A stretch of 64,000 bases of DNA from Macrostomum hystrix (taxonomy: Eukaryota > Animalia > Platyhelminthes): positions 10,726,001 through 10,790,000 of the forward strand of contig CATNEN010000003.1 of NCBI GenBank assembly GCA_950097015.1, in the 5' to 3' direction. The notes under the pieces are model-generated. The model did not search any database, had not been told where the DNA came from, and saw only the letters and a list, made by a program, of their open reading frames with translations. A program made the translations under genes and the position numbers. Below, piece after piece: positions 6,166 to 28,029 of this stretch (the first letter of the stretch is position 1; every line of letters starts with the position of its first letter).

Positions 6166-7321
6166 GGATATAATATTGTCTAATCGACGCTAATATATTT
6201 GTTGCTATTTTCACGACTAAAATTAACGCTTTTTAAATTATCCATTTGTTTCTTCAACTGGCCCTGTAATCATGAGCTGAGTATTTTTATACAGTTAAAC
6301 AAAAGCGCTTACGGTTAATATGCGAATTGATATACATTTGCTAAAACTCTCTTAGGTACACTGAGTTTATTTGTTTTGAGCATCGTTTTAATACATTCAA
6401 ACATTGTTTAAATATTCTCCTTAAATACACACTTTATTTCTGCAGTTAAAAGAGAAATTTCACGGCCTTCATGGCGCGAATTCAAACTTTATGAAGAATC
6501 GCGCGACATTTTCAGTTTTTATCCGAAATTTGGGTTCGAAAATCTCGGATACTTACTAGACTGTTTATCTGATGTATTGTCGATTTCTGATTCATAATGC
6601 ACCATGTTTCATATGCTTGCCGATAGTCTAGAATGCATGTATATTATTCTGTGCGTCATATTTATATACTACTATCATTTTAGGTGTCAGTAGATATGTC
6701 CGTTTTTTTATTATCCAATGCTAGAATTTGAAACATTTTCAGATTTTTTAGGGTTTTGCCTACTTAATAAACTAAACTACTTCCCATCGGAATTAATTAG
6801 GATCTTGTGCTAATACTTCTGTCCCAAAGCAGGTTTTTACATTTATTGACTTGTTATTCAGCTTACAGTTGCATGAATATTTATTTATAAAATACAATCT
6901 GGCGTTTTTATATTGGCTATTAAAAATCTAACCTCTAAAAATTACTGCAAATTGCAGATTTTTCTGCGTTTTCTGCTTTTTTGAAGCTAAAATTAGATTA
7001 TTTTCATAAGTATTTGGCATCGAGACCGTTTGTTTTTTAGGAGTGTGGTGGTTTTCAAGGCAATACATTTTCTGCCTCTCCATCAGCCTAGCCAATCTAA
7101 TTGATAGAAATAATAATAACAATAAAGCCAGTGAAATTCAGTAACTCGTGACTTTTTCTTTCTGCAGCTGCTCGCCAACAACCAATGAGCAACTCGGAGC
7201 AGAGAAACAACTCTGAAAGGCTTCTTATTGGCTGAGCAGAATTATAAATACTGCTATTTGGTGGGAGCCTAAACTAATTTGGCTGCAATCGAAAATCGAA
7301 TCGCTTACCGCACCTTGCAAA

Positions 7322-10300
7322 ATGTTCCCCTTTCTGAATTTGCTCTCACGAGTCGTGCTTTTCCTGATGAACTCACTTCATCCTGAAGAGAAGCAGCAAG
7401 CGTCACTCACTGACGAGGAGCTGCTGGCTGCCATCAGGGACGACGACGTGGCCTCAGTAGATCGGCTCATTGCCAGTGGCAAGAGCATCGACGCCTTCGT
7501 TGCGTTTAGAGGCACATTTTATACCCCAGCGATGCTTGCGTGCGAATTCGGAAGACACGACATCCTGATGAGACTCATCCACGGCAGGGCGGATGTAGAC
7601 AAGCAGAACTGGAGAGGAACCACGGCATTGTGGATTGCATCACAAAATGGTTATCAGCAGCTTGTGGATTCGCTCATCAGAGCACAAGCCGACATCAACA
7701 TTCAACAACACCAGGGCACATCACCTCTCTGGATTGCCTCACAAGAAGGCCATCATGAGGTGGCTCGCTCACTCATTCAAGCAGCAGCCGATGTCAATCT
7801 TCAAGAGAAAGTTGATGGCTTATCACCTCTCTACATTGCCTCACATTTCGGCCGTCATGAGGTTGCTCGCTCACTCATTCAAGCAGGAGCTGACGTCAAT
7901 CTTCAAGAGAAAGTTAATTGCTTATCACCTCTCTACATTGCCTCACAAAAGGGCCATCATGAGGTTGCTCGCTCACTCATTCAAGCAGGAGCTGACGTCA
8001 ATCTTCAAGAGAAAGTTAATGGCTTATCACCTCTCTACATTGCCTCACAAAATGGCCATCATGAGGTGGCTCGCTCACTCATTCAAGCTGGAGCCGACGT
8101 CAATCTTCAAGAGAAAGTTAATGGCTTATCACCTCTCTACATTGCCTCACAAAATGGCCATCATGAGATGGCTCGCTCACTCATTCAAGCAGGAGCCGAC
8201 GTCAATCTTCAAGAGAAAGTTGATGGCTTATCACCTCTCTACATTGCCTCACATTTCGGCCGTCATGAGGTTGCTCGCTCACTCATTCAAGCTGGAGCCG
8301 ACGTCAATCTTCAAGAGAAAGTTAATGGCTTATCACCTCTCTACATTGCCTCACAAAATGGCCATCATGAGGTGGCTCGCTCACTCATTCAAGCTGGAGC
8401 CGACGTCAATCTTCAAGAGAAAGTTCATGGCTTATCACCTCTCTACATTGCCTCACAAAATGGCCATCATGAGGTGGCTCGCTCACTCATTCAAGCAGGA
8501 GCTGACGTCAATCTTCAAGAGAAAGTTAATGGCTTATCACCTCTCTACATTGCCTCACAAAATGGCCATCATGAGGTGGCTCGCTCACTCATTCAAGCAG
8601 GAGCTGACGTCAATCTTCAAGAGAAAGTTAATGGCTTATCACCTCTCTACATTGCCTCACAAAATGGCCATCATGAGGTGGCTCGCTCACTCATTCAAGC
8701 TGGAGCCGACGTCAATCTTCAAGAGAAAGTTCATGGCTTATCACCTCTCTACATTGCCTCACAAAATGGCCATCATGAGGTGGCTCGCTCACTCATTCAA
8801 GCAGGAGCTGACGTCAATCTTAAAGAGAAAGTTGATGGCTCATCACCTCTCTACATTGCCTCAGAAAATGGCCATCATGAGGTTGCTTGCTCACTCATTC
8901 AAGCAGGAGCTGACGTCAATCTTCAAGAGAAAGTTAATGGCCGCTCATCTCTCTACATTGCCTCACAAAATGGTTATCATGAGGTGGCTCGCTCACTCAT
9001 TCAAGCTGGAGCCGACGTCAATCTTCAAGAGAAAGTTCATGGCTTATCACCTCTCTACATTGCCTCACAAAATGGCCATCATGAGATGGCTCGCTCACTC
9101 ATTCAAGCAGGAGCCGACGTCAATCTTCCAGAGAAAGTTCGTGGCGCGTCACCTCTCTACATTGCCTCACAAAAAGGCCGTCATGAGGTGGCTCGCTCAC
9201 TCATTCAAGCAGGAGCTGACGTCAATCTTCAAGAGAAAAAATATGGCGCGTCACCTCTCTACATTGCCTCACAAAATGGCCATCATGAGGTGGCTCGCTC
9301 ACTCATTCAAGCAGGAGCTGACGTCAATCTTCAAGAGAAAGTTAATGGCTTTTCACCTCTCTACATTGCCTCACAAAATGGCCATCATGAGGTGGCTCGC
9401 TCACTCATTCAAGCAGGAGCTGACGTCAATCTTAAAGAGAAAGTTGATGGCTCATCACCTCTCTACATTGCCTCACAAAATGGCCATCATGAGGTTGCTC
9501 GCTCACTCATTCAAGCAGGAGCTGACGTCAATCTTCAAGAGAAAGTTAATGGCCGCTCATCTCTCTACATTGCCTCACAAAATGGCCATCATGAGGTGGC
9601 TCGCTCACTCATTCAAGCAGGAGCCGACGTCAATCTTCCAGAGAAAGTTCGTGGCGCGTCACCTCTCTACATTGCCTCACAAAAAGGCCGTCATGAGGTG
9701 GCTCGCTCACTCATTCAAGCAGGAGCTGACGTCAATCTTCAAGAGAAAAAATATGGCGCGTCACCTCTCTACATTGCCTCACAAAATGGCCATTATGAGG
9801 TGGCTCGCTCACTCATTCATGCAGGAGCTGACGTCAATCTTCCAGAGAAAGTTCATGGCTTATCACCTCTCTACATTGCCTCACTTTGCGGTCATCATGA
9901 GGTGGCTCGCTCACTCATTCAAGCAGGAGCTGACGTCAATCTTCAAGAGAAAGTTGATGGCTTATCACCTCTCTACATTGCCTCACAAAATGGCCATCAT
10001 GAGGTGGCTCGCTCACTCATTCAAGCAGGAGCCGACGTCAATCTTAAAGAGAAAAAATATGGCTCATCACCTCTCTACATTGCCTCACAAAATGGCCATC
10101 ATGAGGTGGCTCGCTTACTCATTCATGCAGGAGCTGACGTCAATCTTCCAGAGAAAGTTCATGGCGAGTCACCTCTCTACATTGCCTCACAAAATGGCCA
10201 TCATGAGGTTGCTCGCTCACTCATTCAAGCAGGAGCTGACGTCAATCTTCAAGAGAAAGTTAATGGCCGCTCATCTCTCTACATTGCCTCACAAAATGGT

Positions 10301-13300
10301 TATCATGAGGTGGCTCGCTCACTCATTCAAGCAGGAGCCGACGTCAATCTTAAAGAGAAAAAATATGGCTCATCACCTCTCTACATTGCCTCAGAAAATG
10401 GCCATCATGAGGTTGCTTGCTCACTCATTCAAGCAGGAGCTGACGTCAATCTTCAAGAGAAAGTTAATGGCCGCTCATCTCTCTACATTGCCTCACAAAA
10501 TGGTTATCATGAGGTGGCTCGCTCACTCATTCAAGCTGGAGCCGACGTCAATCTTCAAGAGAAAGTTCATGGCTTATCACCTCTCTACATTGCCTCACAA
10601 AATGGCCATCATGAGATGGCTCGCTCACTCATTCAAGCAGGAGCCGACGTCAATCTTCCAGAGAAAGTTCGTGGCGCGTCACCTCTCTACATTGCCTCAC
10701 AAAAAGGCCGTCATGAGGTGGCTCGCTCACTCATTCAAGCAGGAGCTGACGTCAATCTTCAAGAGAAAAAATATGGCGCGTCACCTCTCTACATTGCCTC
10801 ACAAAATGGCCATCATGAGGTGGCTCGCTCACTCATTCAAGCAGGAGCTGACGTCAATCTTCAAGAGAAAGTTAATGGCTTTTCACCTCTCTACATTGCC
10901 TCACAAAATGGCCATCATGAGGTGGCTCGCTCACTCATTCAAGCAGGAGCTGACGTCAATCTTAAAGAGAAAGTTGATGGCTCATCACCTCTCTACATTG
11001 CCTCACAAAATGGCCATCATGAGGTTGCTCGCTCACTCATTCAAGCAGGAGCTGACGTCAATCTTCAAGAGAAAGTTAATGGCCGCTCATCTCTCTACAT
11101 TGCCTCACAAAATGGCCATCATGAGGTGGCTCGCTCACTCATTCAAGCAGGAGCCGACGTCAATCTTCCAGAGAAAGTTCGTGGCGCGTCACCTCTCTAC
11201 ATTGCCTCACAAAAAGGCCGTCATGAGGTGGCTCGCTCACTCATTCAAGCAGGAGCTGACGTCAATCTTCAAGAGAAAAAATATGGCGCGTCACCTCTCT
11301 ACATTGCCTCACAAAATGGCCATTATGAGGTGGCTCGCTCACTCATTCATGCAGGAGCTGACGTCAATCTTCCAGAGAAAGTTCATGGCTTATCACCTCT
11401 CTACATTGCCTCACTTTGCGGTCATCATGAGGTGGCTCGCTCACTCATTCAAGCAGGAGCTGACGTCAATCTTCAAGAGAAAGTTGATGGCTTATCACCT
11501 CTCTACATTGCCTCACAAAATGGCCATCATGAGGTGGCTCGCTCACTCATTCAAGCAGGAGCCGACGTCAATCTTAAAGAGAAAAAATATGGCTCATCAC
11601 CTCTCTACATTGCCTCACAAAATGGCCATCATGAGGTGGCTCGCTTACTCATTCATGCAGGAGCTGACGTCAATCTTCCAGAGAAAGTTCATGGCGAGTC
11701 ACCTCTCTACATTGCCTCACAAAATGGCCATCATGAGGTTGCTCGCTCACTCATTCAAGCAGGAGCTGACGTCAATCTTCAAGAGAAAGTTAATGGCCGC
11801 TCATCTCTCTACATTGCCTCACAAAATGGCCATCTTGAGGTGGCTCGCTCACTCATTCAAGCAGGAGCCGACGTCAATCTTCCAGAGAAAGTTCGTGGCG
11901 CGTCACCTCTCTACATTGCCTCACAAAAAGGCCGTCATGAGGTGGCTCGCTCACTCATTCAAGCAGGAGCTGACGTCAATCTTCAAGAGAAAAAATATGG
12001 CGCGTCACCTCTCTACATTGCCTCACAAAATGGCCATTATGAGGTGGCTCGCTCACTCATTCAAGCAGGAGCTGACGTCAATCTTCCAGAGAAAGTTCAT
12101 GGCTTATCACCTCTCTACATTGCCTCACTTTGCGGTCATCATGAGGTGGCTCGCTCACTCATTCAAGCAGGAGCTGACGTCAATCTTCAAGAGAAAGTTG
12201 ATGGCTTATCACCTCTCTACATTGCCTCACAAAATGGCCATCATGAGGTGGCTCGCTCACTCATTCAAGCAGGAGCCGACGTCAATCTTAAAGAGAAAAA
12301 ATATGGCTCATCACCTCTCTACATTGCCTCACAAAATGGCCATCATGAGGTGGCTCGCTTACTCATTCATGCAGGAGCTGACGTCAATCTTCCAGAGAAA
12401 GTTCATGGCGAGTCACCTCTCTACATTGCCTCACAAGAAGGCCATCATGAGGTGGCTCGCTCACTCATTCAAGCAGGAGCCGACGTCAATCTTCCAGAGA
12501 AAAAATATGGCGCGTCACCTCTCTACATTGCCTCAAAAAATGGCCATCATGAGGTGGCTCACTCACTCATTCAAGCAGGAGCTGACGTCAATCTTCAAGA
12601 GAAAGTTCGTGGCTCATCACCTCTCTACATTGCCTCACAAAATGGCCATCATGAGGTTGCTCGCTCACTCATTCAAGCAGGAGCTGACGTCAATCTTCCA
12701 GAGAAAGTCCATGGCGCGTCACCTCTCTACATTGCCTCACAAAATGGCCATCATGAGGTGGCTCGCTCACTCATTCAAGCAGGAGCCGACGTCAATCTTC
12801 AAGAGAAAGTTGATGGCTTATCACCTCTCCATATTGCCTCACAAAATGGCCATCATGAGGTGGCTCGCTCACTCATTCAAGCAGGAGCTGACGTCAATTT
12901 TCAAGAAAAATCATTGAAGCAGCGATCCAGCAGAAGGTATGTATTTGATTAAAATTAAAAGTTTGTAATTATAATAATTCATTTCTATTGCCTTATCGGG
13001 ACAGATGTGCAGCTGACGGGACTCATTGCGTAACGCATTTGCATCTGCAATACGAGCTCAATACAAGCAAAGATTCCAGTTTCTTACTTGCACAACCTGC
13101 TCATCTGTTATTATTTTTCTCAGACGTTTTGTTTTTGAGTTTGTGTCATTATTCCTGGATATGCTCACTGCTTCTAGAGAAAACACTAACCACAAAACTT
13201 CACTGTCTAAACAGGCAAAATCTTTTAAATGTTTCTGAGCATGGAAAATTTGAGCAAGGGAATTTAATAGAAGTTTGAAAACCGCTTTCACTACTCCTCT

Positions 13301-15285
13301 CACCCTTCAGAGCCTCCCAGCCTCACTGAAATTCAGCACTGCCGCCTCCTCTCACCCTTCAGAGCCTCCCAGCTTCACTGAAACTCAGCACTGCCGCCTC
13401 CTCTCACCCTTTAGAGCCGCACCCAGCGACGCAGAGTTGAGCCAGCTGCTGCACTCCAAGCTCTCTCAGTCGGGATTCGTGGACTCCAGAGCCGCCTTGC
13501 AGATCGCTGTGGCTGACGTCTTGCAGGATGTTCTCAGGAAGAGATTGAACTCTGAGAAATGGTTCGCTGTGGGCAGCTTCTCTGAGGCCTGGGGCAACAG
13601 CCTGGTCTCTCTGGATGGCGGAACTGACATCGACTCTGACATCGATGTTATTCAGCTGATTCCAGGAAGGCCGATTCACCCGAGAGATGTGTGCGAGTGC
13701 GACCGAGTGGAGGCTGCTCAGACAGTGGAGCTCAGCAATGGCCACATCCTGATCTCCGGATTCGGTGAGAATTTCCTGCCAGAGACTATCGGGATGGCTG
13801 GGACAAGAATCGAGCATGTGTTTGGCTTGCTCATCTTCTTTGGCTTTCTAAAGCAAACAACAAACAAGGAAAACAAGCAAATTTTTCTGTTTTCTGAGAG
13901 TTTCTGAGAGTTAAAAGCTGGAAGCATTTGCAATATTTCTCGCATTTCCCATTCCTCCAGCCTCCAACCCAGCCCAGACAAAAAAGGGCTCAGCCCTGAG
14001 ACCGGCTGTGGACGAAGTCACCGCCCGCCGCCTCTGCCGCTACCCTCCCATCGCGCCGCTGCAGCCACCAAGACTCTCCAACTCCAACATCCCCCAGTCC
14101 GTGCTGCAGTCGCTCCAGCGAGACCTCACCTCTGCCTCATCCCCCTGTCACGTGGTGCACGCAGCTCCTCCCGGAATGGGGGGCCAGCAGCTCCGAGTGA
14201 GCAGCAGCTTCCTGGAGAGGCGACTGCTGCGGATTCTCAGCACTCTGCAAGGCCAGCTGTTCGTCACACTCAAGTGGCTGCTGAAGAAAAAGATCTCAAA
14301 CGTCGGCTTGAAGTCCTATCACGCAAAGACCGTCACGTTCCGAATGCTGGAGGAGACACCGGCTGAGCAGTGGAAGCCGGAGAATCTCGTGAGTCTCACG
14401 AGACGCTCGCTGCAGATGCTGCTTGACGGTGTGGAGAGCGGCTGCAGATCAGACACACCTGACGGTCGGATCCTGGAGCACTTCTTCCTGAGCGATGCCG
14501 CTGTGTACCTGAAAGGCTTGAAGTCGCCCACATCAGCTGAGAGAGTGAGCGAAGCGTTGAATCGGGCAGCCGGTGCATTGAGAGACGCCATGGCTGAGCT
14601 GCCTCAGCTGCTGCTGCAGTTCGAGGACAGTCTGCGACCCGTCACCAAATCGGGCCGATTCCACTTCCACCCGTTCCTCATCCTGCCGATTCTTCACGTC
14701 AGACCCGTGTCAGAAGCCAAGACATGCGAGTTCCACGAGATCTACGACATCGTGAGAGAGTCGGTGCTTCGTCTGTCCGATGGAGACCGCAGCCCGCAGT
14801 CCCGAGAGAGTCTCGCAGAGCTGATCAACAAACTGCCAGAATGCGCCCGATCAGCGCGAGAGTCTCTCAAAGCGCTGGCCTGCCTGAAGTTCGGCGACCG
14901 ACTCAGTGCAGCGAGAGTTGTGAGCGACTGCGGGCCGTTCAGTGCGAGCAGAGGCATCGATTGGGGAGCTGAGAGGTCGGCGAGTGAGGCCACTGCGGAC
15001 TTTGTGTGGCAGCACCTGACGAGCCGAGACTCCGCCTGTAAATTCTGCTTCGAGTTTTACAAGCGACCGAAGCTGCCGATTGAGCACAAAGTCTTTGCCC
15101 GCTGCTTTCCGCTGCAGATGAAGAACTACAGCAACTGGTTCTATCTGAACTTTGACGCTCTGCTGCGGGCTCTTCGCAATGAGCTGACAGGAGCAGGAGA
15201 CGGGAGCGATCAGGACTGGATCCGGGATGTGGCTCAGAGGGAGGATGCGGATGAGCAGGAGCTGCTGGTGGCTGCGGCGATCTGA
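7322..15285 (+). CDS. Ankyrin-repeat / cGAS-like (Mab-21, cGLR) nucleotidyltransferase fusion, copy 1; exons 7322-12936, 13415-13764 (alternative in-frame acceptor 13373), 13961-15285; about 2430 aa
   Basis: About 53 ANK repeats; donor AAG|gtatg (phase 2) joins ...tttag|A GCC GCA CCC. Exon 2 has VGSFSEAW...DSDIDV (NTase GS + DxD). Exon 3 has PAVDEV (third acid) and the Mab-21 C-lobe motifs [40 protein letters not shown]. The true start may be a downstream Met (MNSLHPEE). Confidence 0.85.
7700..12910 (+). repeat. Coding tandem array of 102-bp (34-aa) ankyrin units
   Basis: Near-identical units with higher-order periods of 1530 bp (15 units) and 714 bp (7 units). Confidence 0.97.
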
Positions 15286-15639
15286 GGAGATCTGGAGCTG
15301 CTGCGGCGGCTGCGCAATTGAACAAATAACCATTCAACAGCTGGTTGTTCCACTCCATGAAATAAAGAGCCGCTTTCAAGAACTGCGGAAGGTCTGCGAT
15401 GCAACCCAGATTTTTGGGGGAATTTGCAGTAACGACTTTAACGCAACGCGTATTTGGGGCTTCGGGAAGGACTTCGTCCTGCACTCGCCTACAGCAAGAG
15501 AAACAAAGGGTGGTTGCAGGTGCTGCACGTAGTGCCGTTGCACGCGGGGCTGCTTTACAGGATGTGTCACCTCTGGTTTTTTTTAATGTCATTTTTCCTT
15601 AAAAAATGCTTAAATTTGACCACTCCCATTCGGGTGGAT

Positions 15640-16000
15640 CACTAGATTTACTATGTACACTCACTTCTCTCTCAAATAAAGTTTCTTTCACTCCCGGTAG
15701 GTATAATGGAGAATTGCACCTACCCGTCTACTCTTTCGCAGGGCCTGGGACGAATTTAACTTTAAGATTAAATCCTATAGACTGGACTGCATATCACGAC
15801 GACATGGCATATAAAAAAGCAGAGGAAACTTCTACTTCAGCAGAAGAAGCTTTGTCTAAAAACATATAGCTAGATGAACAGATGTTACAAGAACTAGAAG
15901 CCATCCCCTCAGAAGATTTAACTGTAAAGGAACGGTTAACACGACAGCTTGCATGTAAAAAGAATTATTCAAGCAAAAGTTAGATTTGGCCTAGGGTTAA
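15640..16000 (+). pseudogene. Polinton/adintovirus-type PLA2X (parvovirus VP1u-like phospholipase A2) remnant
   Basis: ELHLPVYSFAGPGTNL...NPIDWTAYHDDMAY...(stop/frameshift)...DEQMLQELEAI...ERLTRQL / IIQAKVRFGLG resembles the YxGPGxxL...D..A..HD.AY PLA2 motif. Confidence 0.7.
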
Positions 16001-16059
16001 CCCGTCATAAAACACACAAGCCTAATAAATGCCTATTCTGCACAACACTTTATGGCCAG

Positions 16060-16650
16060 GGTCTTACTCTGGAAGAGGCAATAAAAAAGCACATGCCATA
16101 TCGTATCGTAAGCCAAAAGTATTTAGAAAATGTGTGCACCATTTTAAAGACGAGATATGGCATGCGGATTTAGTTGTTATGCCGACAGAACGAAATTTTA
16201 AATATATTCTAACAGTTCTGGACGGCTTCACTCGTTTTGCTTGCGTGATTCCTTTAAAGTCAAAGAAATAAGAATAAGTAGCTAAAGCATTAGAAGCTAA
16301 TATATAAAAATCAGGCCGGAGTTCAGAACGCCTATAGATGTGTAGAGGAAGGCAAAGAATTTTATAACCACTACATGTATAAACTAAACTACATGCAGTA
16401 AATGCTAGTAACGAGGAACCACTTGCGTGCCTGCGACCTCCCACATCTAAAATTCAAGTAAGTAACAAAGTTCACATATATAAATACAAAGATAAGTTTT
16501 AAAAGGGTAGAAAGGGGTATTGGAAAATATCACAAGTGTTTATAGTGAAGAAAGTTTAAAAAAACAACGCTTATATATAACTTATATTTTAGAAAATAAG
16601 GATAAAGAAGAAATTATTGGAAGTTTTTATAAAGAACAGCTTTTAAAGGC
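16060..16650 (+). mobile_element. Polinton/Maverick-type rve integrase remnant (frameshifted, internally deleted)
   Basis: DEIWHADLVVMP...FKYILTVLDGFTRFACVIPLKSK; GKEFYN (about 16350-16367); SKIQVSNKVHIYKYKDKF*KG; YILENKDKEEIIGSFYKEQLLK. These are collinear with Polinton integrase motifs. Confidence 0.8.
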
Positions 16651-17007
16651 CTTATGCAGTTCCTGCAGTACCTGCCTGCGAAGCAGCATTACATGCCTTC
16701 TCAACTCTATTCATTTGTTTATTTAATACTTTAATACTACACATGCTTTTAACGGACGTACGCTGGATTTTTTATAGTAAGTTTTCTTGTAACAACACAT
16801 GTGTTAAGCAGACTTTCATCTTGTTGTAATAAAATGAATGTCCTAGCTAGAGCGTGAGGAATTTAAAGCTAGCGACTATTCACCGGATTCGGTGTCCGAC
16901 GCAATCGGTTCAATAGCAGCAGGGGAAATCTGAAAATAAATAGCGTTAAGAGACTGGGGTGGGCGAGCGAAGCGAAGAGACCCGCGTGTCGTCCTCCGGC
17001 CCGGCGA

Positions 17008-17204
17008 CAGTGGCGCAACCAGGGACGGGGGTGGCGGCCGCCCTCCCCAAGTCCAACGGCCATACCGGCCCTTGAAATTGGCCCAGGAATGGTGGGCGAA
17101 AACCGCGAAACAGAGCGCGCTCCACCTGGCGGCCGCCCCCCCTTCGACCCGCGGGGCAATGTACGCAAAGGGCAATGTACGCAAAAACCGCCCCTAAGGC
17201 ACTG
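17008..17204. mobile_element. Possible hAT-type MITE (197 bp)
   Basis: Ends CAGTG...CACTG flanked by 8-bp near-duplicates CCCGGCGA (17000-17007) and CCTGGCGA (17205-17212); the terminal inverted match is short. Confidence 0.4.
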
Positions 17205-17599
17205 CCTGGCGAAACTCCCAATGAAAAAAAAGAATAACAGTATGAACACGAAGACTCGAATAATTTGATTGGGAGTGATTTAATATTATGTTTTGACTCG
17301 CCGACTCCAGATAAGAATAGGAATTGATTTGACTCTAGTTTACCTGCTCAACTTGATTTAAAAGTTACACCGACAGAATAAGGATATTCGCACGGAAAGC
17401 AATTATAGTGCGCTCATAGTGAAAAGCAAAATTTGGTCCGGGGAACTCGGATATAAAAATGTTACTTAACTGGCCTAATCCGCGCCCTACTCTTCCCCGA
17501 GAGGCTCCGGTTGTCTCTGCTTTCAGCGCTGCCCCGACAGATCCTATCGGTTGGCACTCCTTCTGCCTGACGACGGAGTCTCCGAAGAGAGCACGTACT

Positions 17600-19510
17600 G
17601 ACTTCGACAACAAGCGCCTATCTATACCACCCTTGTCAGCGGCGCACTCTCAAGACGCGTAGCGCCGAAAGCTACGCCGATAGATCGACGCCTGGCTGTC
17701 CGAGTGGAGGAAGATTTCTGCTCCGTGGACATTTTGATTGTATCCGGGGCGCAGGAACAGGGCGGTAGAGTTTATGCCGGTGTGCTGGGAGAAGGTCGCC
17801 ACAGTTTTCCCTCCGGACATAATGCAGTAGCCGAAACCAGAGACCGAGTTGATTTGCGAACCGTCGGTGAAGCAGTGAATTTCACGGGGTTGGCCGTGGT
17901 CACGTACTTACTGGCGAGGCGGAATGCTGGTTTTGAATTTTAGCGGTGGGCACAGCTTCGACGGAATTCCGTCTGAGAGAATTTTGAGGCCTCCTCCTGC
18001 GTCCAGGTCCCGTAGGCTGAGGTCGCTGTGGGGCTGGAGGTTCCGCTTGCTGAAGGCAAGTTGCTTCCGGATGGAGACGCCCGCGTCCAGAAGACGGCGA
18101 GCCGTCTTCATCGCTTCCCCTTTGATAAAAAGATCTAAAGGGGGAAGGTCCAGGAAGGCATTCATGCCAGCGAAGGGAGTGGAGGGTGCCGCACTCATGA
18201 TGGCTCGACAAGCACGGCCCTGCACCTTGTTTAGGGCCTCCAGGACCCGTTGGTCTCCAGGGCACTATTCCAGATGAAGCCGGCAAAAGAAATGGCCTGT
18301 GTAACAATGGTAGTGTAAATCCATCAGAGACGGCGGGGGGTGAGGCCCCAGGTAGCACAGAAGGCTCTGCGGATCTGCGCGAGCGTAGCGAGAGCTTTGC
18401 GAGTTTTAAATTTGACGTGAGGTGTCCAGCTCAGCCTGTGATCGAGGATGACACCTAAGCATCTAGTTTGCTTCTCCATGGCGATGGGTTTGTCATAGAG
18501 AAGAAGAGGCTCAATCCTCCAGTTTCGTTTGCTGGTGAACATAATGGCGACGGTCTTGGACTCAGAGAGTTTGAGGCCGCAGCTATGAGCCCAGCGCTCG
18601 GCACGGTGGATGAAAGCTTGCAAAAGGTCTCTAAGGACCGGGGGAGAAGGTCCGGCCACAGTGGCGGTGATGTCGTCAGCATAGCCGATTTTTTGGACCG
18701 GGTCCGGGTTAGGGCTGCAGAGCAGCTCGTCCATGACAAGGTTCCAAAGGATCGGACTGAGAACGCCACCCTGCGGGCCTCCCTTCTGGACTTTCACAGA
18801 ACGGGAGTGGCCAAGCAGGTGCTCGTGCGCAGCCCGGCGCTCCAGGGCTCGCCTAAAGGCTCCGAAGAGCGCATTGTCGAAGGCAACATCAATGTCGAGG
18901 AAAAGCGAGAGAGCGAAACCGTGCCAAGCACGGCGCGCTCCAGCTTGTCGACAATGGCATGCAGAGCACTTTCGATGGAGCGTCCGGATCGAAAGGCGTG
19001 CTGGTTGGCGGAGAGCGGGGAGTTCCTCAGCTCAACGTGAAGGAGGCGCCAAAGAACCAGCCTTTCAAGCAGCTTAGGAAAGAAAGATGTTAAGCTGATG
19101 GGGCGGAAGACTTTGGCGGAATGGTAGTCTCCCTTCCCAGTCTTGGGGATTAAGACGATGGTGGCTTCCTGCCAAGACATGGGTACGTACCCGAGGGTGA
19201 TACAGGCCTTGAACAGGTTGCAGAGGAGGCCGAGGAACCTGTCATTTTTCACCGCTTCATGTAGGAAGTCGGGGTAAATGTTGTCAGGTCCAGGCGACTT
19301 AAAATGTGAAAAGGAATTAGCAGCGCGAGCTGTCCGTTCTCTAGTAATAATGGTGGTCGCAAGGATGTGTCCACCAAGAGTGTGGTCCGGCGGGTCCTGA
19401 AGCGGCGCGGTCCACGGGAAAGCGCGGGCGAGCATGATGTTCAGCGATTCGCCAGGATTCTCAGCAAGCCGGCCGTCAGGTCTTTTGATCACTGAGAGCT
19501 TCGTCATTTT
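17600..19510 (-). mobile_element. Decayed, 5'-truncated non-LTR retrotransposon (LOA/R1-like): RT + RNase H
   Basis: KSPGPDNIYP, IPKTGK..FRPISLTSF, QHAFRSGRS, GGPQGGVLSPILWNL, GYADD, LGVILDHRLSW; RNase H motifs CFTDGS (about 17870) and HSDSQA (about 17700); several frameshifts and stops. Confidence 0.9.
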
Positions 19511-19521
19511 GTCAAGAGTGA

Positions 19522-19865
19522 CTCACCTGACAGAATTCTCACCTGATAGACAGAATTCTCACCTGACAGATAGAATTCTCACCTGACAGACAGAATTCTC
19601 ACCTGACAGACAGAATTCTCACCTGACAGATAGAATTCTCACCTGATAGACAGAATTCTCACCTGACAGATAGAATTCTCACCTGATAGACAGAATTCTC
19701 ACCTGATAGACAGAATTCTCACCTGATAGACAGAATTCTCACCTGATAGACAGAATTCTCACCTGATAGACAGAATTCTCACCTGATAGACAGAATTCTC
19801 ACCTGATAGACAGAATTCTCACCTGATAGACAGAATTCTCACCTGTTAGACAGAATTCTCACCTG
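19522..19865. repeat. 20-bp minisatellite (CTCACCTGATAGACAGAATT)n
   Basis: About 17 tandem copies abutting the LINE 5' truncation. Confidence 0.95.
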
Positions 19866-20180
19866 GTATTGAATATTCTCATTTGTTAAAAACGCATTCC
19901 CACCATCACATTTTTTTCTTTTCGCATATCGATCAGAATCCTATTCTCAGAATTCTCACTTGTTAACGGAATTCTCGCCTTTTAGACAGAAATAAGACAG
20001 AAATGAAATATCGCCAGCAATAGCAGCTTCTCGCCAACAACCAATGAGCAACTCGGAGCAGAGAAGCAACTCTGAAAGGCTTCTTATTGGCTGAGCAGAA
20101 TTATAAATACTGCTATTTGGTGGGAGCCTAAACTAATTTGGCTGCAATCGAAAATCGAATCGCTTACCGCACCTTGCAAA

Positions 20181-23100
20181 ATGTTCCCCTTTCTGAATTT
20201 GCTCTCACGAGTCGTGCTTTTCCTGATGAACTCACTGCTTCCTGAAGAGAAGCAACAAGCGTCACTCACTGACGAGGAGCTGCTGGCTGCCATCAGGGAC
20301 GACGACGTGGCCTCAGTAGATCGGCTCATTGCCAGTGGCAAGAGCATCGACGCCTTCGTTGCGTTTAGAGGCACATTTTATACCCCAACGATGCTTGCGT
20401 GCGAATTCGGAAGACACGACATCCTGATAAGACTCATCCATGGCAGGGCGGATGTAGACAAGCAGAACTGGAGAGGAACCACGGCATTGTGGATTGCATC
20501 ACAAAATGGTTATCAGCAGCTTGTGGATTCGCTCATCAGAGCACAAGCCGACATCAACATTCAACAACACCAGGGCGCCTCACCTCTCTGGATTGCCTCA
20601 CAAGAAGGCCATCATCAGGTGGCTCGCTCACTCATTCAAGCAGCAGCCGATGTCAATCTTCAAGAGAAAGTTGATGGCTTATCACCTCTCTACATTGCCT
20701 CACAAAATGGCCATCATGAGGTGGCTCGCTCACTCATTCAAGCAGCAGCCGATGTCAATCTTCAAGAGAAAGTTGATGGCTTATCACCTCTCTACATTGC
20801 CTCACATTTCGGCCGTCATGAGGTTGCTCGCTCACTCATTCAAGCAGGAGCTGACGTCAATCTTCAAGAGAAAGTTAATTGCTTATCACCTCTCTACATT
20901 GCCTCACAAAATGGCCATCATGAGGTGGCTCGCTCACTCATTCAAGCTGGAGCCGACGTCAATCTTCAAGAAAAAGTTCATGGCTTATCACCTCTCTACA
21001 TTGCCTCACAAAATGGCCATCATGAGGTGGCTCGCTCACTCATTCAAGCAGGAGCCGACGTCAATCGTCAAAGAAATTCTGGCGAGTCACCTCTCTACAT
21101 TGCCTCACAAAATGGCCATCATGAGGTGGCTCGCTCACTCATTCAAGCAGGAGCCGACGTCAATCTTCAAGAGAAAGTTGATGGCTTATCACCTCTCCAT
21201 ATTGCCTCACAAAATGGCCATCATGAGGTGGCTCGCTCACTCATTCAAGCAGGAGCCGACGTCAATCTTCAAGAGAAAGTTAATGGCTCATCACCTCTCT
21301 GGATTGCCTCACACGAAGGCCATCATGATGTGGCTCGCTCACTCATTCAAGCAGGAGCCGACGTCAATCGTCAAGAGAAAGTTAATGGCTCATCACCTCT
21401 CTGGATTGCCTCACACGAAGGCCATCATGAGGTGGCTCGCTCACTCATTCAAGCAGGAGCCGACGTCAATCGTCAAATAAATTCTGGCGAGTCACCTCTC
21501 TACATTGCCTCACAAAATGGCCATCATGAGGTGGCTCGCTCACTCATTCAAGCAGGAGCTGACGTCAATCTTCCAGAGAAAGTTCGTGGCGCGTCACCTC
21601 TCTACATTGCCTCACAAAATGGCCATCATGAGGTGGCTCGCTCACTCATTCAAGCAGGAGCTGACGTCAATCTTCAAGAGAAAGTTGATGGCTTATCACC
21701 TCTCTATATTGCCTCACACAATGGCCATCATGAGGTTGCTCGCTCACTCATTCAAGCAGGAGCCGACGTCAATCGTCAAATAAATTCTGGCGAGTCACCT
21801 CTCTACATTGCCTCACAAAATGGCCATCATGAGGTGGCTCGCTCACTCATTCAAGCAGGAGCTGACGTCAATCTTCCAGAGAAAGTTAATGGCCGCTCAC
21901 CTCTCTACATTGCCTCACGAAATGGCCATCATGAGGTGGCTCGCTCACTCATTCAAGCAGGAGCCGACGTCAATCGTCAAAGAAATTCTGGCGAGTCACC
22001 TCTCAATATTGCCTCACACAATGGCCATCATGAGGTTGCTCGCTCACTCATTCAAGCAGGAGCTGACGTCAATCTTCCAGAGAAAGTTCATGGCGCGTCA
22101 CCTCTCTACATTGCCTCACAAAATGGCCATCATGAGGTGGCTCGCTCACTCATTCAAGCAGGAGCTGACGTCAATCTTCCAGAGAAAGTTAATGGCCGCT
22201 CACCTCTCTACATTGCCTCACACAATGGCCATCATGAGGTGGCTCGCTCACTCATTCAAGCAGGAGCTGACGTCAATCTTCGAAAGAAAGTTGATGGCTC
22301 ATCACCTCTCCACATTGCCTCACAAAATGGCCATCATGAGGTGGCTCGCTCACTCATTCAAGCAGGAGCTGACGTCAACCTTCCAGAGAAAGTTCATGGC
22401 TCATCACCTCTCTGGATTGCCTCACACGAAGGCCATCATGAGGTGGCTCGCTCACTCATTCAAGCAGGAGCCGACGTCAATCGTCAAATAAATTCTGGCG
22501 AGTCACCTCTCTACATTGCCTCACAAAATGGCCATCATGAGGTGGCTCGCTCACTCATTCAAGCAGGAGCCGACGTCAATCTTCAAGAGAAAGTTAATGG
22601 CTCATCACCTCTCTGGATTGCCTCACACGAAGGCCATCATGAGGTTGCTCGCTCACTCATTCAAGCAGGAGCCGACGTCAATCGTCAAATAAATTCTGGC
22701 GAGTCACCTCTCTACATTGCCTCACAAAATGGCCATCATGAGGTGGCTCGCTCACTCATTCAAGCAGGAGCTGACGTCAATCTTCCAGAGAAAGTTAATG
22801 GCTTATCACCTCTCCATATTGCCTCACAAAATGGCCATCATGAGGTGGCTCGCTCACTCATTCAAGCAGGAGCTGACGTCAATCTTCCAGAGAAAGTTAA
22901 TGGCCGCTCACCTCTCTACATTGCCTCACGAAATGACCATCATGAGGTGGCTCGCTCACTCATTCAAGCAGGAGCCGACGTCAATCTTCCAGAGAAAGTT
23001 AATGGCTCATCACCTCTCTACATTGCCTCACAAAATGGCCATCATGAGGTGGCTCGCTCACTCATTCAAGCAGGAGCCGACGTCAATCGTCAAATAAATT

Positions 23101-26100
23101 CTGGCGAGTCACCTCTCTACATTGCCTCACAAAATGGCCATCATGATGTGGCTCGCTCACTCATTCAAGCAGGAGCTGACGTCAATCTTCCAGAGAAAGT
23201 TCATGGCGCGTCACCTCTCTACATTGCCTCACAAAATGGCCATCATGAGGTGGCTCGCTCACTCATTCAAGCAGGAGCTGACGTCAATCTTCCAGAGAAA
23301 GTTAATGGCTTATCACCTCTCCATATTGCCTCACAAAATGGCCATCATGAGGTGGCTCGCTCACTCATTCAAGCAGGAGCTGACGTCAATCTTCCAGAGA
23401 AAGTTAATGGCCGCTCACCTCTCTACATTGCCTCACGAAATGACCATCATGAGGTGGCTCGCTCACTCATTCAAGCAGGAGCTGACGTCAACCTTCCAGA
23501 GAAAGTTCATGGCTCATCACCTCTCTACATTGCCTCACAAAATGGCCATCATGAGGTGGCTCGCTCACTCATTCAAGCAGGAGCTGACGTCAATCTTCCA
23601 GAGAAAGTTCGTGGCGAGTCACCTCTCTACATTGCCTCACAAAATGGCCATCATGAGGTGGCTCGCTCACTCATTCAAGCAGGAGCTGACGTCAACCTTC
23701 CAGAGAAAGTTCATGGCTCATCACCTCTCTGGATTGCCTCACACGAAGGCCATCATGAGGTGGCTCGCTCACTCATTCAAGCAGGAGCCGACGTCAATCT
23801 TCAAGAGAAAGTTAAGGGCTTCTCACCTCTCCACATTGTCTCACTATTCGGCGATCATGAGGTGGCTCGCTCACTCATTCAAGCAGGAGCCGACGTCAAT
23901 CGTCAAAGAAATTCTGGCGAGTCACCTCTCTACATTGCCTCACAAAATGGCCATCATGATGTGGCTCGCTCACTCATTCAAGCAGGAGCTGACGTCAATC
24001 TTCCAGAGAAAGTTCATGGCGCGTCACCTCTCTACATTGCCTCACAAAATGGCCATCATGAGGTGGCTCGCTCACTCATTCAAGCAGGAGCTGACGTCAA
24101 TCTTCCAGAGAAAGTTCATGGCGCGTCACCTCTCTACATTGCCTCACAAAATGGCCATCATGAGGTGGCTCGCTCACTCATTCAAGCAGGAGCCGACGTC
24201 AATCTTCAAACAAATTCTGGCGATTCACCTCTCTACATTGCCTCACTTTGCGGTCATCATGAGGTGGCTCGCTCACTCATTCAAGCAGGAGCTGACGTCA
24301 ATCTTCCAGAGAAAGTTCGTGGCGCGTCACCTCTCTACATTGCCTCACAAAATGGCCATCATGAGGTGGCTCGCTCACTCATTCAAGCAGGAGCTGACGT
24401 CAATCTTCAAGAAAAATCATTGAAGCAGCGATCCAGCAGAAGGTATGTATTTGATTAAAATTAAAAGTTTGTAATTATAATAATTCATTTCTATTGCTTA
24501 ATCGGGACAGATGTGCAGCTGACGTGACTCATTGCGTAACGCATCTGCATCTGCAATACGAGCTCAATACAAGCAAAGATTCCATTTTCTTACTTGCACA
24601 ACCTGCTCATCTCTTATCATTTTTCTCAGACGTTTTGTTTTTTGAGATTGTGTCATTATTCCTGGATATTTTCAAGTATGCTCACTGCTTCTAGGGAAAA
24701 CACTAACCACAAAACTTCACTGTCTAAACAGGCAAAATTTTTTAAAATGTTTCTGAGCATGGAAAATTTGAGCAAGGGAATTTCATAGAAGTTTGAAAAC
24801 CGCTTTCACTACTCCTCTCACCCTTCAGAGCCTCCCAGCCTCACTGAAACTCAGCACTGCCGCCTCCTCTCACCCTTCAGAGCCTCCCAGCCTCACTGAA
24901 ACTCAGCACTGCCGCCTCCTCTCACCCTTTAGAGCCGCACCCAGCGACGCAGAGCTGAGCCAGCTGCTGCACTCCAAGCTCTCTCAGTCGGGATTCGTGG
25001 ACTCCAGAGCCGCCTTGCAGATCGCTGTGGCTGACGTCTTGCAGGATGTTCTCAGGGAGATAATGAACTATGAGGGCTGGCATATTCAAGGCAGCTTCTC
25101 TGAGGCCTGGGGCAACAGCCTGGTCTCTCTGGATGGCGGAACTGACATCGACTCTGACATCGATGTTATTCAGCTGATTCCAGGAAGGCAGTTTCACCCG
25201 AGAGATGTGTGCGAGTGCGACCGAGTGGAGGCTGCTCAGACAGTGGAGCTCAGCAATGGCCACATCCTGATCTCCGGATTCGGTGAGAATTTCCTTCCAG
25301 AGACTGTCGGGATTGCTGGGACAAGAATTGAGCATATGTTTGGCTTGCTCAACTTCTTTGGCTTTCTAAAGGAAACAACAAACAAGGAAAAGAAACACAT
25401 TTTTCTGTTTTCTGAGAGTTAAAAGCTGGAGGCATTTGCAATATTTCTCGCATTTCCCATTCCTCCAGCCTCCAACCCAGCCGATTCATGGAATGGCTCC
25501 GCCCTGAGACCGGCTGTGGACGAAGTCACCGCCCGTCGCCTCTGCAGCTACCCTCCCATCGCGCCGCTGCAGCCACCAAGACTCTCCAACTCCAACATCC
25601 CCCAGTCCGTGCTGCAGTCGCTCCAGCGAGACCTCACCTCTGCCTCATCGCCCTGTCACGTGGTGCACGCAGCTCCTCCCGGAATGGGGGGCCAGCAGCT
25701 CCGAGTGAGCAGCAGCTTCCTGGAGAGGCGACTGCTGCGGAGTCTCAGCACTCTGCAAGGCCAGCTGTTCGTCACACTCAAGTGGCTGCTGAAGAAGAAG
25801 ATCTCAAACGTCGGCTTCAAGTCCTATCACGCAAAGACCGTCACGTTCCGAATGCTGGAGGAGACACCGGCTGAGCAGTGGAAGCCGGAGAATCTCGTGA
25901 GTCTCACGAGACGCTCGCTGCAGATGCTGCTTGACGGTGTGGAGAGCGGCTGCAGATCAGACACACCTGACGGTCGGATCCTGGAGCACTTCTTCCTGAG
26001 CGATGCTGCTGTGTACCTGAAAGGCTTGAAGTCGCCCACATCAGCTGAGAGAGTGAGCGAAGCGTTGAATCGGGCAGCCGGTGCATTGAGAGACGCCATG

Positions 26101-26889
26101 GCTGAGCTGCCTCAGCTGCTGCTGCAGTTCGAGGACAGTCTGCGACCCGTCAACGACTTGGGCCGATTCCACTTCCACCCGTTCCTCATCCTGCCGAGGC
26201 TCGATGACCGACACGTGTCAGAAGCCAAGACATGCGAGTTCCACGAGATCTACGACATTGTGCGAGAGTCGGTGCTTTGTCTATCCGATGGAGACCGCAG
26301 CCCGCAGTCGCGAGAGAGTCTCGCAGAGCTGATCGACAAACTGCCAGACTGCGCCAGATCAGCGCGAGAGTCTCTCAGAGCGCTGGCCTGCCTGAAGTTC
26401 GGCGACCGACTCAGTGCAGCGAGAGTTGTGAGCGACTGCGGGCCGTTCAGTGCGAGCAGAGGCATCGATTGGGGAGCTGAGAGGTCGGCGAGTGAGGCCA
26501 CTGCGGTCTTTGTGTGGCAGCACCTGAGGAGCCGAGACTCCGCCTGGAAATTCTGCTTTGTGTTTGACGAGCGACCGAAGCTGCCGATTGAGCACGAAGT
26601 CTTTGCCGGCTGCTTTCCGCTGCAGATGGAGAACTACGAAGACTGGTTCTACCTGAACTTTGACGCTCTGCTGCGGGCTCTTCGCAATCAGCTGACAAGA
26701 ACAGTAGACGCGAGCGATGAGGACTGGATCCAGGATGTGGCTCAGAGGGAGGATGCGGATGAGCAGGAGCTGCTGGTGGCTGCGGCGATCTGCGGAGATC
26801 TGCGGAGATCTGGAGCTGCTGCGGCGGCGGCGCAGAAGAATCACTCACGAGCTGTGCCGGCTGCCGGGCTGGCTGCAGCAAAAGATTGA
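20181..26889 (+). CDS. Ankyrin-repeat / cGAS-like (Mab-21, cGLR) nucleotidyltransferase fusion, copy 2; exons 20181-24442, 24933-25282, 25469-26889; about 2010 aa
   Basis: Paralogue of copy 1 with the same intron positions and phases; about 40 ANK repeats (mixed 33 and 34 aa); IQGSFSEAW...[26 protein letters not shown]. Confidence 0.85.
20560..24415 (+). repeat. Coding tandem array of 99/102-bp ankyrin units
   Basis: 34-aa units (..EKVxG..) interspersed with 33-aa units ([16 protein letters not shown]). Confidence 0.97.
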
Positions 26890-28029
26890 GAGGCTGAGTT
26901 GAGCTGAGACTGGCTGGAGGACCCTGAGAAAGATCAGAGTCAAACTAGCAGAATCGGCTCTGGAAGCTCTTCTGTGGCTTCTGTGGCAGTGGGATTTCTA
27001 GTGAGGCAGTGGGATTTCTAGTGAGGCAGTGGGATTTCTATCATGGTTCGCGACAACAAAATTAGTTGTGAAAATCGGACTTTCTCTCCTTACCAATGAG
27101 TGAAAATGAGACGATATTGTGTACTGATATTTGAGACCATCTGCTGCTAGCACAAGAACTGAAGTGGTGAGTTCTTGCCTTCACATGTACTCTTGAACCC
27201 GCTTTGAGTTTTATTTTTCAACAGTACGCAGCCTTCAGAGGCGCCGCGCAGTTGGGGCCCGATGGGTGCAAGTGTAGGTAATTGCTATTTCTGTTTTTAC
27301 ATTGCGTAAATTCATATTTTTTCATTGATTGTGTACAATGTGTGTACAATGTGTGTACAGTTAACTGTTAAAGTTTGGTCGCTATTTTAGCATTTGCGCA
27401 TTTACTTTGTATATTAGGACAGTATTTCTGAAGGGTTTAAGCCATGAAAACTGTTTTAGCCCAGATTTTATCTACGGAGTTCAAAGTTCTACCTAAGCGA
27501 AGACCTTAGAGTTAGACCTAAGCGAAGACCTTAGAGACCCTCTCAACAAGTAAACAAATCTGCCTTGAAAAATGATTTGCTTCAAGTGAAAATGTGAGCG
27601 GCCTCGAAAATAAATTTTCACAAAGTCAGCACTGGGTTTTCTTAGATAAAGCAGTGGTGGGGCCAAGGCCTGTAGCAGCTGGTGTCTTCTGCTTTACATT
27701 TCTTGGCGTTTCTGCTAAACCTGATTCTTATCGAAAATTCTTATCGCAAACTAATCATTCGTTTCTTAACTGCTGAGCTGAAAGAATTGAGTTTTTGATT
27801 CTAGAATATTCTACTAAATAATAGCATGCCAAAAAACTGAAGAATAAACCGACTCCTATTTTGTTTCTTGAGTTCTTATTTTGTATCAGCAATCAAGCAT
27901 TGACTCGCATATCCACCAGCTTCTCAATTAATTTCCAATTGTTCTACAGTTTCTAACCAGTACCTACGCGCAGTCCCAAGAGATTCCCAGAAAGCATTGC
28001 AACAAAATTTCTCAGCTTCTTGTTCCTTG

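Follow-up and report, generated by a model that had tools for sequence, protein, structure and literature searches.

The 64,000-nt window of Macrostomum hystrix DNA analyzed here (assembly GCA_950097015.1, contig CATNEN010000003.1, positions 10,726,001 to 10,790,000 of the forward strand) carries two genes in which a very long array of ankyrin (ANK) repeats precedes a predicted cGAS-like receptor (cGLR) of the nucleotidyltransferase (NTase) type. Copy A (7322-15285, numbered from the first letter of the window) and copy B (20181-26889) are tandem neighbors on the plus strand. Each comprises one long ankyrin open reading frame (ORF), at 7322-12952 in copy A (1876 aa) and 20181-24458 in copy B (1425 aa), and two shorter open frames. 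Donor, acceptor, and phase were inspected by hand on the sequence of both copies. Two phase-consistent GT-AG introns per copy lead from the ankyrin ORF to a 116-codon exon and then to an exon of 440-472 codons. In copy A, exon 1 ends at 12936 (AG/GTATGT, phase 2), exon 2 occupies 13415-13764 (preceded by TTTAG and ending G/GTGAGA, phase 1), and exon 3 covers 13961-15285. The copy B exons lie at 20181-24442, 24933-25282, and 25469-26889. The features of the two copies, and a transposon fragment that separates them, are as follows.

7171-7321, plus strand: copy A promoter-like block, with CCAAT at 7182-7186, inverted CCAAT at 7227-7231, TATAAATA at 7243-7250, and the ATG at 7322
7322-12936, plus strand: copy A exon 1, N-terminal cap and 53 ankyrin repeats, with homogenized 34-residue units at ~7799-12898
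12937-13414, plus strand: copy A intron 1 (GT...AG), its 3' end a 52-nt minisatellite at 13294-13418 (2.4 units)
13415-13764, plus strand: copy A exon 2, NTase N-lobe with long helix, GS motif, and D-I-D catalytic pair
13765-13960, plus strand: copy A intron 2 (GT...AG); Macrostomum lignano protein PAA65091.1 aligns over the junction at residue 632
13961-14619, plus strand: copy A exon 3, first part, with the third catalytic Asp (VDEV), R-x-S-x-S-x-x-E, and the Mab-21_C lobe (SYHAKT, HFFL)
14620-15285, plus strand: copy A exon 3, second part, a family-specific tail domain ended early by TGA at 15283-15285
20030-20180, plus strand: copy B promoter-like block, shared with that of copy A
20181-24442, plus strand: copy B exon 1, N-terminal cap and 40 ankyrin repeats (28 units of 34 residues and 11 of 33)
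24443-24932, plus strand: copy B intron 1, with the 52-nt acceptor minisatellite at 24812-24936
24933-25282, plus strand: copy B exon 2, NTase N-lobe
25283-25468, plus strand: copy B intron 2
25469-26889, plus strand: copy B exon 3, with catalytic Asp, Mab-21_C lobe, and tail; a ~10-nt duplication near 26788-26803 shifts the frame of the last ~30 codons
18794-19507, minus strand: fragment of a long interspersed nuclear element (LINE) reverse transcriptase between the copies and outside both genes (RVT_1, E 1.3e-5, below cut-off)

The promoter-like block of ~150 nt is common to both copies, with 25-mer matches from 7171 to 20030-20180, and places CCAAT, inverted CCAAT, and TATAAATA ~70 nt 5' of the ATG. 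Summing the exon lengths gave 2429 codons for copy A and 2010 for copy B. A first-pass annotation, made from the letters alone, had proposed single proteins of about 2430 and 2010 aa joined by phase-consistent GT-AG introns, and the hand-inspected splice sites, PAA65091.1, and the paralogous locus L038 all point the same way. Searches were run on single exons. The order of domains given by that annotation (ANK, NTase, Mab-21) was recovered along with its motifs; GS...DID lies in exon 2 and VDEV in exon 3 of both copies, and SYHAKT and HFFL are also present.

Three independent lines, all drawn from sequence comparison, support the ankyrin ORF and the NTase and Mab-21 exons forming one protein. 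M. lignano PAA65091.1 (P0002, 1117 aa) holds ankyrin repeats, then the NTase, then the Mab-21_C region within one gene model. For both copies, its alignments with exons 2 and 3 meet at residue 632. At paralogue L038 (5751-7106), Pfam ankyrin repeats and the NTase N-lobe sit inside one unbroken 452-codon ORF, so splicing need not be invoked for this fusion. At nearly all of the 144 genomic loci where exon 2 was matched, it stands apart as a short open frame of its own, and the exon structure is therefore a trait of the family.

At the 3' end of intron 1, each 52-nt minisatellite unit holds an acceptor-like site, of which the last alone is in phase. The units (13294-13418 in copy A, 24812-24936 in copy B, and upstream of exon 2 at L023-L034) each contain a polypyrimidine tract followed by a CAG or TAG acceptor. 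Their number ranges from 1 to at least 8 among close paralogues, and the last unit abuts exon 2 in 12 of the 13 repeat-bearing loci.

Counting repeat ends yielded exactly 53 ankyrin repeats in copy A and 40 in copy B, the same numbers that had been estimated at first reading. Tandem Repeats Finder reported a 102-nt unit present 50.9 (A) and 37.9 (B) times with 90-91% matches. Pfam scans of the first ~400 residues of each copy matched Ank (E 2e-77 and 1.4e-81) and Ank_2 (E 1e-71 and 1.5e-95). Repeats within the window arrays are 87% identical.

Variation between repeats is concentrated on a few positions. Across 51 distinct units, the 34-residue core unit is hypervariable at positions 2, 5, 6, 8, 12, 16, 17, and 19, while the second helix and the G-A-D-V-N turn show almost no variation. 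The ratio of nonsynonymous to synonymous differences per site (pN/pS) is 1.10 at the variable codons versus 0.26 on the framework. The framework value shows purifying selection on the fold. At the surface positions constraint is relaxed or variation is favored, a pN/pS of this size not being proof of positive selection. The variable positions correspond to positions 33, 2, 3, 5, 9, 13, 14, and 16 of designed ankyrin repeat proteins (DARPins). The six positions randomized in DARPin libraries (2, 3, 5, 13, 14, and 33), which form the concave binding surface, are all among the eight. DARPins differ in having 2-3 internal modules, whereas the window arrays are natural, use a 34-residue unit, reach 53 repeats, and vary at two further positions (DARPin 9 and 16).

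Copy A contains recent, near-perfect higher-order duplications, with units 15-27 recurring as 30-42 and units 21-27 appearing again as 43-49, which is a signature of unequal crossing-over. Copy B alone shares identical unit types with copy A (5 types); none were found at the other sampled loci. The earlier description of the arrays as homogenized is upheld, with variable surface positions.

In the enzyme half, exon 3 of the two copies scored 20.0 and 17.9 bits on Pfam Mab-21_C (PF20266), below the cut-off of 24.1, and exon 2 of either copy, scanned separately, matched no Pfam family. Scanning the exons apart lowers such scores. Because the copies' own exons stay under the Pfam cut-offs, the family assignment rests on relatives and on fold. 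The relatives P0004, P0026, P0032, and P0036 pass Mab-21_C at 25-32.6 bits, and PF03281 (Mab-21) was matched by none of the family members scanned with Pfam. An exhaustive HMMER search with exon 3 returned 141 representative proteins. The closer matches that were looked up all came from M. lignano, under the source names 'ANK_REP_REGION' or 'Mab-21 domain-containing', and four distant matches that were scanned (P0087, P0093, P0099, and P0104) are ordinary Mab-21 plus Mab-21_C proteins.

Fold was assessed on M. lignano P0007, a 598-aa protein without the ankyrin part that is 57% identical to exon 3, rather than on a window protein. An AlphaFold model built from a 42-sequence alignment had a mean predicted local distance difference test score (pLDDT) of 91.6 and a predicted template modeling score (pTM) of 0.91. 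The top 50 Foldseek matches were cGAS structures and the oyster receptor Cv-cGLR1 (rank 36), with E values of 3e-8 to 5e-7. Structural alignment with VIA-align gave Z 19.1 to cGAS bound to cGAMP (4k9b) and Z 19.0 to Cv-cGLR1 (8gjw), over 256 residues at 3.4 Å, and Z 17.7 to human MB21D2 (7lt1). A profile from an ankyrin-containing alignment (A1) was swamped by ankyrin proteins and was dropped in favor of an ankyrin-free alignment (A2). Against PDB sequences, the ankyrin-free family profile matched only a 'cGAS-like receptor 1' chain (8gjy, E 1.2e-4) and cGAS, and aligned the family's L-K-Y..K-K, S-Y-H-A-K-T, and H-F-F with their cGAS counterparts. As modeled on P0007, the enzyme half is a bilobal NTase of the cGAS/Mab-21 fold. 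The kinship with cGAS and Mab-21 suggested in the first-pass annotation accordingly held on structure, where P0007 folds onto cGAS (E ~3e-8); on Pfam, the window exons fall below the Mab-21_C cut-off and several relatives pass it.

The active site is complete in both copies. The catalytic residues G53, S54, D75, and D77 of exon 2 and D17 of exon 3 correspond to P0007 G41, S42, D63, D65, and D121, and the three acidic positions (D75, D77, and D17) are intact as had been noted. Of 42 aligned family and outgroup sequences, 39-41 have a residue at each of these five positions, and 36-39 of those retain the catalytic one. The copies also retain R-x-S-x-x-x-x-E, K, K, and Y-H-x-K, residues that line the nucleotide pockets in cGAS.

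Two cysteine features were observed in the enzyme half. A conserved H...C-x-C lies in the N-lobe (alignment A1, P0007 residues 75-81; 'HPRDVCEC' in window exon 2), and a C-C follows the third catalytic Asp in the family (P0007 residues 127-128), reduced to a single C in copies A and B. Judged from these residues, the two elements could form a family-specific metal site.

Beyond the Mab-21_C lobe lies a tail that had been described as a helical extension of about 200 aa. A separate C-terminal domain is indeed present, although it measures 220-250 residues, is mixed helical, has no fold match, and carries lesions at its extreme C-terminus in both copies. The copy B tail was modeled with a pLDDT of 82.8, and Foldseek returned no match for the tail at E<=0.001. 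The best VIA-align Z, 7.9, to helical proteins of TPR-like and 14-3-3-like kinds, is within the noise for helical models, and no fold was assigned. A search of the ESM Atlas gave only leads scoring 0.85, to mollusc Mab-21_C clusters.

Copies A and B belong to a large family. A genome-wide search for further ANK-Mab-21 paralogues, as proposed at first reading, found at least 98 exon-3 and at least 144 exon-2 peptide matches, almost all without stops. Architecture was tabulated for 20 sampled loci, of which 15 are close relatives. Arrays were located with tblastn, since diverged ones escaped a strict ankyrin regular expression. An ankyrin ORF of 380-1602 codons lies upstream on the same strand in 17 of the 20. 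At the remaining three, LINE (endonuclease plus reverse transcriptase) or integrase ORFs occupy the place of the ankyrin exon (L027:7072-9999, minus strand; L035:3395-6394, minus strand; L029:1-1839, plus strand), and transposon insertion may have split or killed these copies.

Among ~15 sampled paralogues of a young subfamily the enzyme exon is 90-93% identical, whereas the number of units per array runs from 6 to 53, with 74-90% identity between the units of any one array. Other long arrays in open frame include those of L032 (~44 units) and L022 (~30). The enzyme half is a near-constant module, and the ankyrin half varies by gene in repeat number and surface residues. In older paralogues, the ankyrin repeats show divergence of an ordinary kind (34-62%). 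Set against the M. lignano models described below, giant homogenized arrays look like a feature of the young M. hystrix subfamily, though the M. lignano assembly, being older, might conceivably have collapsed such arrays.

Both the architecture and the family had been reported before. The first-pass annotation knew of no characterization of the architecture, which overstated its novelty: ANK-cGLR is among the domain classes of Li et al. 2023 (PMC9980059), whose Table S2 places Ank_2 on M. lignano proteins of the same family. Five M. lignano members were included in their screen of 140 enzymes, to which dsDNA and poly I:C were offered (Table S3). The M. lignano ANK-cGLRs reach 71% identity to the window genes over exon 3, with the same ANK-NTase-Mab-21_C-tail order and the same GS..SDID..D motifs. 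The models examined differ in having ~3-16 repeats that are 40-58% identical, compared with 53 and 40 repeats that are 87% identical and vary only at surface positions in the window. The same authors describe coral ANK-cGLR fusions and propose the ankyrin repeats as ligand- or protein-interaction modules (Fig. 4C). These, set beside the window genes by description only, likewise fuse a cGLR core to ankyrin repeats, but they come from another phylum with few genes per genome (3/42), and no giant homogenized arrays are reported there. In a literature search of limited coverage we found no paper with arrays of 40-53 homogenized repeats, surface-focused variability, the pattern of constant enzyme and variable array, or the size of the family in the M. 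hystrix genome.

Compared with mouse and human cGAS, Crassostrea virginica Cv-cGLR1 (8gjw), a 'cGAS-like receptor 1' chain (8gjy), and human MB21D2 (7lt1), the family shares the bilobal fold (Z 17.7-19.1 over ~255-273 residues) and the GS/DxD/D catalytic residues. Its R-x-S-x-S-x-x-E, K..K, and S-Y-H-x-K-T elements can be aligned to those of cGAS. Identity to cGAS and the animal cGLRs is 14-22%, however, and the window family lacks the basic N-terminus of cGAS and has a core that is not basic. Relative to cGAS, the window proteins are extended at the N-terminus by 1300-1800 residues of ankyrin solenoid and at the C-terminus by a domain of ~220 residues.

Fungal NOD-like receptors (NLRs) of the HET-E/HET-D type, with high-internal-conservation ANK, TPR, or WD40 repeats (Dyrka et al. 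2014, PMC4986451), show comparable near-identical tandem repeats, surface-focused variation, and repeat numbers that differ between paralogues. In the window genes the repeats are N-terminal rather than C-terminal, the output is a cGLR NTase, and the host is an animal rather than a fungus. No window piece or relative that was scanned matched NACHT or NB-ARC in Pfam. The parallel drawn at first reading survived for the behavior of the repeats and did not extend to domain content or repeat position; with no NACHT domain, the resemblance is one of analogy and not of membership.

A possible receiver of an NTase signal is encoded elsewhere in the genome. An ORF at L021:1000-2007 on the minus strand (G000:C2:9104028-9105035) matched STING_LBD with 25 bits (E 1.4e-5) when the full open frame was scanned, below threshold; the same ORF read from its first start codon gave no Pfam match. 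All 13 of its weak PDB sequence matches were STING chains, including a TIR-STING fusion. At least 13 loci carry ORFs of this intron-poor family, mostly within G000:C2 8.97-9.10 Mb. As far as sequence can indicate, the family is a plausible receiver of the NTase signal. Relatives of the enzyme module in M. lignano are fused to further domains. P0070 (PAA59752.1) and P0163 (PAA80948.1) combine the same cGLR-like module with ankyrin repeats and a C-terminal caspase domain (Peptidase_C14, E ~2e-25), and P0069 joins it to WSC, ankyrin repeats, and a RING finger. The caspase, WSC, and RING fusions fit a signaling or cell-death setting and prove nothing.

Taken together, our data favor copies A and B as tandem, recently duplicated members of a Macrostomum-specific ankyrin/cGLR fusion family with a role from sensor to second messenger, a reading to which we assign a probability of roughly 0.6. 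Architecture, fold (on the 57%-identical relative), active-site residues, family size, and the pattern of variation are shown here. Each gene would be read from its own TATA/CCAAT promoter block as three exons, giving a predicted protein with a very long ankyrin solenoid, a bilobal cGAS/Mab-21 NTase with complete active site, and the family-specific tail of ~220 residues. The array would act as the sensor. A protein would be its likeliest ligand, given that proteins are the usual partners of ankyrin surfaces and that the enzyme core lacks a basic character. Specificity would depend on the eight positions of each repeat that are hypervariable and lie on the concave binding surface, and the arrays would diversify through unequal crossing-over and gene conversion. 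Ligand binding would then switch on the NTase to make a nucleotide second messenger, which may be read by the expanded STING-like family of this genome.

A more ambitious form of this proposal is possible, and we offer it tentatively. The more than 100 genes might constitute a germline-encoded, fast-diversifying repertoire, in which a near-constant cGLR second-messenger synthase works together with an ankyrin solenoid that is hypervariable and has as many as 53 repeats. Such solenoids, reshaped by unequal crossing-over and gene conversion in a manner comparable to the fungal high-internal-conservation NLRs or the variable lymphocyte receptors (VLRs) of lampreys, might sense a pathogen or non-self protein and signal through the equally expanded STING family. 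If true, this would be a cGLR system for sensing proteins instead of nucleic acids.

Several findings weigh against the sensor-to-second-messenger reading, and those concerning the enzyme lend some weight to a less probable account. The genes may be genuine ANK-Mab-21 fusions that are neither immune sensors nor makers of cyclic nucleotides. The Mab-21 part would be a scaffold or another transferase, and the arrays would serve a fast-evolving non-immune function such as reproduction, cell adhesion, or the cytoskeleton. Scaffold or other-transferase roles are thought to apply to MAB21L1/2 or MiD51. The human orphan MB21D2 is almost as close to the family in structure as cGAS (Z 17.7), the window exons remain under the Mab-21_C cut-off, and the tail has no known fold. 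The STING-like matches, at 25 bits, lie under their Pfam cut-off of 27. The core charge is near neutral (38 K+R versus 35 D+E in copy A) and no ligand is known; Li et al. 2023 (PMC9980059) link nucleic-acid sensing by cGLRs to a high isoelectric point. A near-neutral core does not favor nucleic-acid sensing and leaves the ligand open. The five M. lignano rows of the 140-enzyme screen carry no active-enzyme label, unlike Sp-cGLR1 or Cg-cGLR1, and according to the authors the apparent inactivity of many cGLRs reflects a missing ligand (Li et al. 2023, PMC9980059).

Several points argue against a non-enzymatic or otherwise repurposed Mab-21. The complete GS/DxD/D site and the cGAS nucleotide-contact residues are conserved across the family under purifying selection. 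No requirement for these residues is known in non-enzymatic Mab-21 proteins. The nearest matches in both sequence and structure are cGAS and cGLR1, not MAB21L1 or MiD51. The relatives fused to caspase domains, together with the expansion of STING-like genes, also run counter to this account.

The remaining adverse findings concern the integrity of the two copies. We consider it improbable that A and B are decaying or dead, as young duplicates that no longer need or translate their enzyme half and whose product is ankyrin-only or absent. Among A, B, and L022 the ratio of nonsynonymous to synonymous substitution rates (dN/dS) is 0.8-1.1; for the A/B pair, exon 3 gives 0.83 and exon 2 gives 1.35. 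For comparison, exon 3 has a dN/dS of ~0.3 versus paralogues that are 58-74% identical and a median of 0.59 among close copies. In most of the close paralogues sampled, the C-terminus leads on into acidic tandem repeats of GEDRQDQ; both copies lack this usual ending. In copy A, a TGA (15283-15285) replaces the Cys codon found in copy B and in L030, a close paralogue from the sample, and a frameshift follows further on (region 15283-15420). In copy B, the duplication of ~10 nt shifts the frame, with the old frame still readable downstream (region 26788-26899). The neighboring paralogue L022, 53 kb upstream, has the same altered ending as copy B. We read the A, B, and L022 endings as those of a subfamily with a changed or damaged C-terminus. 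In addition, the two upstream acceptor-like sites of intron 1, which are out of phase, would lead to an ankyrin-only product ending after 6 codons, although such truncation might be regulated and serve as an alternative. The copies are separated by a LINE fragment, and neither AATAAA nor ATTAAA occurs within 700 nt after the copy B stop.

Site-by-site comparison weakened the reading of the enzyme half as a pseudogene, for which an A/B dN/dS near 1 had been the ground. The excess of dN between A and B is limited to the tail (dN/dS 0.97) and one patch, with a core dN/dS of 0.54-0.63, the lower value being that of the A/B enzyme core. The patch accounts for almost the whole excess in exon 2. The patch is 33 nt long and lies just before the GS loop (13539-13571, exon 2 codons 42-52, versus 25057-25089). 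There dS is 0.69 and dN 0.70, compared with a dS of 0.013 in the rest of the exon. The copy B version resembles that of L022, and the patch looks like gene conversion between paralogues. Of 46 differences between A and B, 44 fall at sites that also vary in other paralogues. At sites invariant in all other sampled paralogues, A and B each carry only 0-2 deviating residues, no more than other copies do. The pattern of sites and patch argues against random decay. So do ORFs of 5.6 and 4.3 kb, the absence of stops from all other exons, the pN/pS of 0.26 on the array framework codons, and the conservation of the promoter blocks between copies.

Finally, it is very improbable that the giant arrays are an assembly artifact, a shorter array falsely expanded or collapsed, for although the near-perfect higher-order duplications of copy A (15-27 as 30-42; 21-27 as 43-49) are hard to assemble, the assembly has only 42 contigs for 220 Mb, the two independent copies are joined by L032 and L022 as likewise long and open-framed arrays, and mis-assembly would rarely leave a frame of 1876 codons open.

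Should copies A and B be sensors coupled to a second-messenger synthase, the family would bear on a wider question. Every cGLR with a known ligand senses nucleic acid; what most animal cGLRs bind, and what the catalogued ANK and TPR fusions do, is still open (Li et al. 2023). The question of non-nucleic-acid cGLR ligands gains a concrete, testable system. The family is a natural test case in which choice of the ligand would fall to the ankyrin surface and its reporting to the enzyme. With ~15 genes that have a 90-93% identical enzyme but different arrays, swap experiments are straightforward. The findings also place a large set of cGLR and STING-like genes in a free-living flatworm, though the phylum is otherwise described as having mostly lost its cGLRs, and would extend the high-internal-conservation repeat strategy of fungal NLRs to an animal cGLR.

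Two further repetitive features were seen near genes of the family. A 20-nt tandem repeat of 17 copies (19529-19865) lies, with the LINE fragment, just upstream of the copy B promoter block. Upstream of the ankyrin ORFs of L023 (1-2358), L025 (1-5112), and L034 (1-5136, all in gene orientation), 2-5 kb of repetitive sequence is open in all three frames of the gene strand.

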